Below are positions 44,888 to 48,606 of a stretch of 64,000 nucleotides of DNA, one piece after another. Source of the DNA: Perna viridis (taxonomy: Eukaryota). The notes beneath the pieces are model-generated. The model was not told the DNA's origin. It saw only the letters and a program-made list of their open reading frames with translations, and searched no databases. Location: the NCBI GenBank assembly GCA_037379345.1, contig CM074522.1:14880001-14944000 (forward strand), given 5' to 3'. The translations under genes and the position numbers were made by a program. Numbering within the stretch: the stretch's first letter is position 1; every line of letters begins with the position of its first letter.

Positions 44888-44921
44888 ATGTTCTACCATA
44901 GACGGCAGATTTCTTGTCCTG
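44888..44921 (+). CDS. PLEKHG5: Candidate internal alternative first micro-exon A (MFYHRRQISCP)
   Basis: gaaATG, 11 codons plus G, consensus donor G|gtaagt. Phase 1 is the same as the RBD exon donor. It shares RRxxSxP with exons B and C. Confidence 0.65.
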
Positions 44922-45064
44922 GTAAGTAAAACTATTTTGTAAATAAGGCAGATATTTTTGATTGACAGTTTCAACCAGTACAGCTAAAGATAAGATCTTT
45001 ATTGATTTAATGTTGTTAATTTTACCTTATGACTGAAGTAGGCGTTGTCTGTTGAATCTTCAGG

Positions 45065-45095
45065 ATGGTACGGAGACGATGCTATTCTTATCCAG
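45065..45095 (+). CDS. PLEKHG5: Candidate internal alternative first micro-exon B (MVRRRCYSYP)
   Basis: aggATGG, 10 codons plus G, donor CAG|gtagga, phase 1. It is a nucleotide-level paralogue of exon C (cggagacg...ttcttatccag|gt). Confidence 0.65.
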
Positions 45096-45207
45096 GTAGG
45101 AAACATTTTGGATCCCATCCTGGCCCTTCCCTTTTTGAATCTCACCCAGGAGTGTGATTTCATTGCCTGATCTCACTTTCTGGTAGGGCAAAAAAGAATT
45201 GTTTGGT

Positions 45208-45465
45208 GAATCTTCTTTTAGGATGGTACGGAAGGTTAAACCCAAGGCTGTGGTGGACTGGGCAAGTAATAACTTGTAAAGCTGTACCCCTGGGGATGAA
45301 GTCTAACCCTTTAAGGCTATGATGGTTTGTGCAAGTAAGAACGGGTCTCGCTATACCCTTTGGGATGATGGCCTTACCCAAGGCTATGATGGTTTGGACA
45401 AGTAAAAACCTTTATTGCTATACCCCTTGGGATGAAGGCCTAACCTAAGGCTATGATGGTTTGAG
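45208..45465. repeat. Diverged ~67-69-bp tandem repeat, about 3.5 copies
   Basis: The unit is GGATG...AAGGCTATGATGGTTTG..CAAGTAA...GCTATACCC. Its start duplicates the start of micro-exon B. Confidence 0.8.
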
Positions 45466-46026
45466 TACAGCCTTCTATCTCTTGTTGTTCCTTTACTTTT
45501 TGTCCCTTGTCCTAACTAAGAAGTTGTTCTAGGGGATGGAGCATGTTCTTGTACAGACAGGCAGTGTATTGGACTCATATTGGGAAAAATATTTTGTCTT
45601 TAAAATTTGTTAGTAATTTACCTTAGGATATGTTGAAGGGGTATATTACCTGCCCAATATGTTCAGATTCTGTTTTAGTTACATTGGATATTGAACCAAT
45701 TTATCTTGTTGTATATGTGGCGAGGTGTTAAATGTTTTGGTTATCAGTTACCCAATGGACATTTTCTGCTCATCTGAACACTTGTGTTCTGTACATGTAC
45801 AGGCAGGTTATTGAACCTGACATTATCATTTAAAATACATATAGCTTTTTGTAACATCTGTATTTGTTTTATCAATAACATTATAATCAGCCTATCAATG
45901 ATAAACTTTAAGAGCTGAACTTTTCTTAGAAATGAGACAATGTATTTTGTTTCCAACTTTTTGGAGCATAAGTACATTTTAGAACTTACAACAGAGTGGA
46001 CTAAGCAATATGGACACATGCCTATA

Positions 46027-46225
46027 CACAGGCAAAAGTATTCATGTGATTTTCTTACAAATTTAACATGATTTTCACAAGAATTGAGCAAATAAATTTT
46101 TTGAGAGACTCACTGTGAAATTCTGATGAATCATGCCTTCACATGAAATTCATGTGAATTGTTTACATGCAATTTGGTGTTAAGTGAATTTCACATGAAT
46201 TTCACGTGAAAAATATTTGCCTGTG
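46027..46225. mobile_element. Small MITE with CAC termini and TA flanks (EnSpm/CACTA-like, uncertain)
   Basis: TATA|CACAGGCAAA ... TTTGCCTGTG|TATA, with internal TTCACATGAA-type palindromic repeats. Confidence 0.7.
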
Positions 46226-47442
46226 TATAAGACATCAAATAAAGTAGTAAATTAGGAAAAGTATAACAATGGGTCATTGTTTTGTGTTTTATAGTAGAAC
46301 CAGAATATAATGGCAGGTGATTTTTGTGTAGCTTTCTGTGAAACAGAACAAAATTACACTAAGCAAGCTAATACAGTATAACCCAGTGATCACGAAATAC
46401 AAAGTGTCTCTTCATACAATTCTGACAGAAAAAAAATCATGGTACTTTTTCATGTAGACTTCAGTTTAATAATTGAATTTTATTATCTTAAAATTCCAAT
46501 TGTAAAACCATTGTTTCTAGTGTGTAGGGTACATGGATTTGATTTGTATTGAAAAAATATCATGTATTAAAATATTACATTTGCTACATTTTTATGAACC
46601 TGCAATATTTCTATATTAGTAATGCATAATGAAATGCATTTCACTGTTAAGACTATACAAGTTTTTCAATGCAACTAACAAATAGTTTTCAAAACAAAGA
46701 ACACCAAATGGCTTATTTGGTATTAAAAAAATAACTAAGTTATTTGAATATCTGACTATGTAACTGATCTCTTAGCAGGATATCAAAGTAAAAAAAAACC
46801 TGATAAATCATCGAATCTACGTAATTTGTGACATTTGAAATTGATTGAAGAACTAAAAAAGGGACATGTTTGTATTATCCTCATCACACTTCTAAATGTA
46901 TGTTAGATGAATGATAGCATGATAGAAACACAAATAATTTCATCCTTCCAACAACAGTTGTGTTCATGCTATCACTAGGATGTATTTTCCTTGGCGTAGC
47001 TTTTCTTTTCCAGGTCTGTAGAGTAAATCTTGTTGTCCCTTAAGAGAAAGTGAACCATTACAGCCAGTAAAACAGTTAACTTCAGAAGATAGAGTTTCTC
47101 TTAAATTTTGATTGAATAAATTTTACTTGATGAAATGTCTCAGTTTATAAGCTAGTCAGTTGTTATAAGGAAATTTGAACTTTCTAGTAAATGATAGGTA
47201 CAATTGAATCTTTGTCTAGTAAGAAAAATAAAGCCTCTTTGTTTAATAAGTCTACATATATGGTATTTAATGTCTTCAGACATAAATATTGAGGGAGAAA
47301 TGAAAAGTAACATATCTATCAATTATGATATATTCCAACTCATAAGAAATTTTTTTTTTTCTTGAAGGATTAATTTCATACAAATGAGAGGTGCCAGTGT
47401 TGGTCATAATGTAAAGAGATGTGTATGCCTTCTTTTCCTTAA

Positions 47443-47820
47443 GGATGTTAGCTGCTCTATATAAAAATAACAAGGATTTCAAAGGGTTGTGAAATCTTCC
47501 ATGTTAGAAGAAAATAAGACGAAAAAAAACAAACAGATAAGTCATTGTGCTAATTTTTGAGATATAAACATTTAACATTTTGGTGGGAAAAAGATTTTTC
47601 TAGATTTTTCAGAGTTTTAGTTTGGAAAATTTTATCCATTAAAAACACTGAAGAAAAAACAATCATTTAATATAAACTTCCCAAATAATATTTAAGGTGT
47701 TTGATGATATGATGAAAAGAAAAGTGGGGGTCACTGGGCAAAATTTATGCTATGAAATGGACAAAACCATTGGAGTCCAAAAATTTGACAAAAATGCCTG
47801 AACATGATCAGGGAACATCC
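47443..47820. mobile_element. Non-autonomous DNA transposon with TTAA TSD (Kolobok-like)
   Basis: TTAA|GGATGTTAGCTG ... CAGGGAACATCC|TTAA, a 12-bp TIR with 2 mismatches. Confidence 0.7.
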
Positions 47821-48572
47821 TTAATAAGTGTCCACCTTTACTGAAGCTATTGAATATCCTGATTTTATTTGTCACCAAATAATACCGGTAATAATGATAT
47901 ATTTGAATAGAATACTTATACTGTTCCATGGTCAGTGAAAATGTACCCTGGTATACCCCACATCAAAGTTAACTTCAAGAGTGGAGAGTACTGGACTTGT
48001 TAAATTTTCAAATCAATGGTACACTTTTGTAAAATCAAAAGTCCTCAACAAGTTGTCAGTTGGAGTTGAAGATCCAGTATCTAGATTTTAAACCTTGGGC
48101 CAACACTAATTGAAGTCTTGAATGATTAAAAGTTCAAGCAACAATCAAAGAGTAAAATTATTTCGAAGTCATTAGTGTCTAACTTGTTGACCATGTATTA
48201 ATATCATGAAGTATATATCGTGACATTAATGGTATTTCTGATCTAGAAAATGATCAATATTGGAATATATGTCTAAATAAGTCCCAGATGGGTTATTTTG
48301 TTGGTCTTTATATATCGCTATAATATAATTGTTTCTAAGCAAATCGCAGGTTGACTAACACATATGCGTAAATTCTGGTATAAATTTTCCATTCCCCAGT
48401 ATCATGGATGGTCAAGTCCACTCGTGGTCTTAAACATTCAGTTGGAATCTGCTACCTGCAGGATTGTAGTTTGTTTTCTTACTTTAATTTACTTTGTAAA
48501 ATATTCTGACTTTACTTATGCTATGTTGAATTTAAGTGCATTGTGACGATGTTTGATAGTGGAATTTTTAGG

Positions 48573-48606
48573 ATGAGTTTCCGGAGACGTAGTTTTTCTT
48601 ATCCAG
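48573..48606 (+). CDS. PLEKHG5: Candidate internal alternative first micro-exon C (MSFRRRSFSYP; may start at the in-frame ATG at 48549, adding MFDSGIFR)
   Basis: aggATG, 11 codons plus G, donor CAG|gttagt, phase 1. Paralogous to exon B. Confidence 0.65.

Follow-up and report, generated by a model that had tools for sequence, protein, structure and literature searches.

A window of 64,000 nucleotides (nt) from Perna viridis (GenBank assembly GCA_037379345.1, contig CM074522.1, positions 14,880,001 to 14,944,000 of the forward strand) carries exons of a gene that is a bivalve RhoGEF (a guanine nucleotide exchange factor for Rho) of the PLEKHG5/Syx type. Positions are counted from the first letter of this window, and the numbering is continued past 64000 for exons that lie downstream. 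One intron of the gene, that following the RBD exon, contains four + strand segments, here called A, B, C and D, which are gathered in a span of 3.7 kilobases (kb) and each open with an ATG and close at a GT donor. These are probably tandem alternative 5' coding exons of the PLEKHG5/Syx-type gene, which splice in phase 1 to an exon beginning at 14944515 on the contig and give rise to an RBD-less product. The features within the window on which this reading bears are the following.

27128..28375, + strand: first coding exon of the long isoform; 3' end approximate; its N-terminus holds R-Q-V-S-A-P-E
35667..35803, + strand: RBD exon 2 in the long isoforms; donor in phase 1, last exon base G; 94% identical to transcript protein P0150
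44546..44921, + strand: exon A whole, 5' untranslated region (5'UTR) and coding part; 5' end approximate; colinear with the 5'UTR of transcript contig L009
44888..44921, + strand: exon A, coding part; MFYHRRQISCP, 11 codons and G, donor GTAAGT, motif H-x-R-x-x-S-x-P
45065..45095, + strand: exon B; MVRRRCYSYP, 10 codons and G, donor GTAGGA, motif R-x-R-x-x-S-x-P; AG directly before G-ATG
46980..47013, + strand: exon D; MYFPWRSFSFP, 11 codons and G, weak donor GTCTGT, motif R-S-x-S-x-P without Arg at -5/-4
48573..48606, + strand: exon C; MSFRRRSFSYP, 11 codons and G, donor GTTAGT, motif R-x-R-S-x-S-x-P

All four segments end in phase 1 with G as the terminal exon base, followed by GT. The first-pass annotation had described A, B and C, placing them in the intron that opens at 35803 with the phase-1 donor of the RBD exon, and this placement as well as the sequence, ATG, GT donor, phase and motif-to-donor distance it gave for each were confirmed; its count of three members was one short, as D, which was found through a repeat search and has the same build, had been overlooked. 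When the window and 50 kb of downstream DNA (114 kb together) were scanned for the pattern [RK]xxSxP with a single base between it and a GT, the + strand returned exactly A, B, C and D, and the - strand returned zero matches. Each of the four is preceded in frame by an ATG at a distance of 10-11 codons. B resembles C significantly at the DNA level (local score 42 against a shuffled maximum of 28), as does D (score 40 against a shuffled maximum of 33), over cores of only 47 nt and 57 nt, respectively. The sole indel in these core alignments is one of 3 nt, in frame, between B and C, and the flanks cannot be aligned. No DNA-level similarity was found between A and the other three segments, which it resembles in motif and peptide only, in agreement with the earlier remark that B and C are alike as DNA and A mainly as a peptide. 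Similarity, phase, strand and proximity are thereby those of a tandem exon duplication, with A related to the rest by motif alone. The retention of ATG, frame, motif, terminal G and donor in B, C and D, despite flanks that have diverged beyond recognition, argues for constraint on these three exons. A dispersed high-copy repeat, against which the first-pass annotation had cautioned, was ruled out, as the A+B stretch and the C stretch are each single copy in the 723-megabase genome (D was not queried). Recursive-splice sites were also ruled out, the AG being without a following GT.

Exon A is in use in a related mussel. The transcript protein P0191 (838 amino acids; in the 90% cluster around P0169) begins with the exact 11-residue exon A peptide, passes from exon A directly to an exon that starts with Glu-Lys, skipping a cassette exon, and then runs on across the DH-PH core as far as the C-terminus. 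P0191 is encoded by the ENA transcript contig L009, which maps exon by exon onto the locus with 72-87% DNA identity. Over residues 12-110, P0191 shares 94% identity with Mytilus proteins, and its source is therefore a different, Mytilus-like mussel. Exon A and L009:221-254 differ in five codons, with five synonymous and no non-synonymous changes; the exon next to A shows only about three-quarters protein identity between the window species and the relative. An in-frame stop lies upstream of the exon A ATG in both species, and the L009 5'UTR is colinear with about 44560-44705 of the window (local score 48, where shuffled sequences reach at most 25-34). It follows from this colinearity that the coding part of A closes a first exon that is ~370 nt long or more, so that the earlier picture of free-standing micro-exons has to be given up for A. 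An open frame of 62 codons, situated in the 5' part of L009, has no match in this genome and was treated as non-coding UTR. A transcript start, a colinear 5'UTR and the shared acceptor come together for A only, and they do so in the related species, which shows that the coding sequence of an RBD-less isoform starts in exon A there. Of the RBD-less isoforms proposed in the first-pass annotation, that from A stands, through P0191 and L009; for those from B and C, as for one from D, the databases searched gave no transcript or protein. Exon A is absent among the Mytilus RefSeq isoforms retrieved and hence brings to mussel PLEKHG5 a class of isoforms that is so far without annotation. The gene also lies on an ENA genomic contig of the same relative (L011).

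The exons to which A-D would be joined lie beyond the window and were placed by eye and by tblastn of relatives.

64515-64606 = C12:14944515-14944606, + strand: acceptor (Glu-Lys) exon, starting 515 bases past the window end; phase-1 acceptor
68719-68880 = L003:4719-4880, + strand: cassette exon of 54 codons with R-R-E-S and R-R-N-S-L-S-F-P sites
72509-72688 = L003:8509-8688, + strand: frame-symmetric coding exon of 60 codons, 92% identical to P0150
88660-88818, + strand: further exon, from relatives mapped by tblastn
from 91942, + strand: first DH exon, from relatives mapped by tblastn

The acceptor exon opens with two codon-completing bases, a phase 1 that fits the RBD exon and A-D alike. 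It is the common phase-1 acceptor that had been expected beyond the window, and the RBD exon is joined to it in P0150 and P0146, transcript proteins of relatives in which the RBD-Glu-Lys junction can be read. Since every donor, that of the RBD exon as well as those of A-D, ends in G, the junction residue is Glu (G+AG) and not the Gly given earlier. Some Mytilus isoforms include the cassette exon at 68719-68880; others skip it, as do P0150 and P0191.

The DH and PH matches and a weak RBD match, together with relatives named PLEKHG5-like, uphold the earlier assignment of the host gene to the PLEKHG5 type. Matches to PF00621 (DH) lie at C12:14971975-14973770, 28-30 kb past the window end. In Pfam searches with the exons, one DH exon was matched with an E-value of 4e-14 and a later exon gave weak PH matches; the exon at 35667-35803 matched the RBD weakly (E 0.0023, short of the cut-off), and its orthologues carry a precomputed PF02196 match. 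PLEKHG5-like proteins of oysters, scallops, clams, abalone and Mytilus were returned by a search with the large C-terminal exon and a word search, the best matches being those of oysters, mussels and scallops, and the long N-terminal exon is most like that of Mytilus. Identity to the Logan transcript protein P0150 amounts to 86-95% for the individual exons. Ser-Glu-Val, a PDZ-binding tail, closes every full-length relative; the last small exon of the gene was not located in this genome.

A matching layout occurs in the scallop Pecten maximus, whose PLEKHG5-like RefSeq entries X2-X7 (XP_033764250 and others; automatic models) have three first exons in the intron homologous to that between the RBD and Glu-Lys exons, spliced in phase 1 to the same acceptor as in the mussel. 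A scan of this intron in the Pecten locus (L010) found two exons with R-x-x-S-x-P, both of them annotated ones, and none on the other strand. One of these (X3) holds MFRHERFYSLP, with the M-F-x-H-x-R-x-x-S-x-P spacing of exon A. Unlike those of the mussel, the Pecten exons are longer (22 and 29 codons), with further residues after the motif, and they lie 6 kb apart and are not visibly paralogous in DNA. By this shared layout, the design predates the split between mussels and scallops. No paper on these Pecten isoforms, or on mollusc PLEKHG5 isoforms, was found in the literature. Clustered protocadherins and UGT1A offer a broader parallel, as there too tandem first exons of one phase are spliced to a common acceptor; in contrast to those systems, the variable part here comprises only 10-11 residues and is a linear motif rather than a domain.

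The 14-3-3 mode I motif is R-S-x-pS-x-P, and this sequence is matched in full (R-S-x-S-x-P) by C and D and more loosely (R-x-x-S-x-P) by A and B. The YAP site has the form H-x-R-x-x-S-x-P. Exon A and its scallop counterpart share this form, a likeness of sequence only. YAP Ser127 and Kif23/CHO1 are HxRxxS sites of LATS/NDR kinases at which a docking place for 14-3-3 is created. His at -5 combined with Arg at -3 is found in A, in its P0191 orthologue and in the Pecten X3 exon and not in B, C and D, where position -5 is Arg (B and C) or Pro (D). HxRxxS is the consensus of LATS/NDR kinases, which require the His at -5, and phosphorylation of such sites leads to 14-3-3 binding (PMC4320110). The motif Ser may therefore be a basophilic-kinase site, putatively of the LATS/NDR type in A and of the Akt/RSK type in B and C. 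A related sequence, R-Q-x-S-x-P-E, stands at the same place in the N-terminus of the long isoform in mussels and oysters, and other bivalve first exons carry R-x-R-S-x-S-L-P. Syx reportedly binds 14-3-3, in work of 2013 attributed to Ngok, and its regulation in vertebrates through phosphorylation and 14-3-3 is ascribed to Ngok et al. (2012, 2013). In vertebrates, 14-3-3 binding by Syx is independent of the PDZ-binding tail, and kinase input controls its localisation and activity (PMC3529520). The Ser806 site of vertebrate Syx, a member of the same RhoGEF family, is a target of protein kinase D and lies in the C-terminal part of the protein, not in an alternative N-terminal exon. Given the motif in all N-termini, that of the long isoform included, and the 14-3-3 binding and phosphorylation of vertebrate Syx, a phospho-dependent 14-3-3 site on every N-terminal variant is a reasonable reading.

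If A-D are tandem alternative 5' coding exons, each would supply a start codon and an N-terminus of 10-11 residues ending in R-x-x-S-x-P, and would splice in phase 1, via the Glu codon, to C12:14944515-14944606. The product would lack the long N-terminal region, the Cys/His segment and the RBD, and would keep the linker, the DH-PH core and the PDZ-binding tail. The motif Ser might then be phosphorylated and dock 14-3-3 as in vertebrate Syx. Use of A is shown in the related mussel, and that of B, C and D is argued from their paralogy and kept frame.

Several observations weigh against such use of the four exons in P. viridis. In the raw reads of the RNA-seq runs X5 and X6, of which 19-24% per run was covered, depth is 0 on A-D, and neither joints nor loose ends occur at the A-D donors. 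The junction reads from A, B and C on which the first-pass annotation had counted are therefore lacking in these two runs, in which this absence is weak evidence as long as the level of the host gene is not measured. No RNA run was found to contain the stretch, and the databases searched hold no protein or transcript starting with B, C or D. An unspliced contig of 167 nt from run X22, of low depth, covers 44734-44900 inside the inferred exon A, and is indistinguishable from intron background because similar stray contigs occur in X1. With transcript support for A alone, it is possible, if on balance unlikely, that only A works as an alternative first exon, the other three being relics of duplication or pseudo-exons whose splicing into mRNA has ceased or never took place. 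D looks the weakest member of the family, having a weak donor (GTCTGT) and having lost the Arg pair, and B starts only 144 nt past the donor of A, so that a separate promoter for B would have little space. However, ATG, frame, motif, G and GT are intact in B, C and D, next to flanks that can no longer be aligned and with the one indel kept in frame, a retention that would be unexpected if relics of such an age had evolved neutrally.

B, C and D are also each preceded directly by a pyrimidine-rich stretch and an AG, in the style of internal exons, and 11 of the 14 bases before the ATG are conserved between B and C. These features, too, count against exons with individual transcription starts, and B, C and D may instead be ATG-bearing exons spliced to a leader; no duplicated leader or promoter was found upstream of them, and no second copy of A's 5'UTR block lies in their vicinity. 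The corresponding alternative, that they are internal exons (AG before G-ATG), either second exons behind a shared non-coding leader or poison exons included after the RBD exon, appears improbable. From AG to donor B, C and D measure 32, 35 and 35 nt, so that their inclusion after the RBD donor would shift the frame, with an immediate stop in C; A measures 36 nt from its AG, and its inclusion would keep the frame. Yet exon A of the relative has a genome-colinear 5'UTR and no upstream exon, and a poison exon needs neither a conserved ATG nor a peptide motif; reads of either form are lacking in X5 and X6. That short open frames in AT-rich intron DNA should match by chance could be suspected from the shortness of the segments and from the lack of DNA similarity between A and the others, but this is hardly credible: the + strand has four matches, gathered within 3.7 kb, against zero on the other strand, and the A peptide is identical in another species, where all codon changes are synonymous. 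The reading of A-D as tandem alternative 5' coding exons thus remains the probable one, and the earlier interpretation as a whole is partly supported.

The first-pass annotation had gone on to propose a cassette system that tunes which kinase acts on the RhoGEF, a proposal that is still an inference from motif matches. A more specific version would have an ancient YAP-like H-x-R-x-x-S-x-P site, shared by mussels and scallops, at the extreme N-terminus of an RBD-less Syx isoform, for which the sister exons swap in sites of the Akt/RSK type, so that the choice of 5' exon sets whether Hippo or growth-factor kinases shut off this activator of RhoA via 14-3-3; this version is speculative and, as it stands, doubtful. 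Alternative N-termini of RhoGEFs are usually seen as domain swaps, whereas the swapped unit here would be a single linear phospho-motif. Its presence in every N-terminal variant, including the long one, points to a site of regulation in the Syx family that has so far gone unrecognised. The locus would thereby provide a clean, testable case of kinase input chosen through promoter or 5'-exon use.

Further alternative first exons were observed at this gene. Another first coding exon lies at 1085-1228 (+) and matches the start of P0152 (Logan, 73% identity) and the starts of the Mytilus isoforms P0202 and P0207, and part of a further alternative 5' coding exon, at 19664-19780 (+), matches P0150 residues 54-92. 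Downstream of the window, an alternative first exon at L004:2987-3124 (C12:14956987-14957124, +) has a basic stretch and R-R-S-W-P and is conserved, being found in P0169, Pinctada P0167, Pecten X8 and P0011; it splices to the 88660 exon, giving a still shorter isoform.

The intron around A-D contains several small repeats. Just downstream of exon B, at 45240-45463 (+), there are 3-4 tandem units of 67-69 nt each, and just before them, at ~45222, the first part of exon B is repeated in truncated form. Short repeat elements at 46061-46257 and 47440-47833 have high RNA depth in the form of pile-ups, and the reads on both run into unlike sequence, which indicates copies expressed elsewhere in the genome. 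In the region of the PH exons, a tandem repeat of ~92 nt in 4-5 copies (L006:715-1211, +) consists of the 3' part of a PH-region exon and the start of the following intron, which places several copies of the exon end and its donor in a row.

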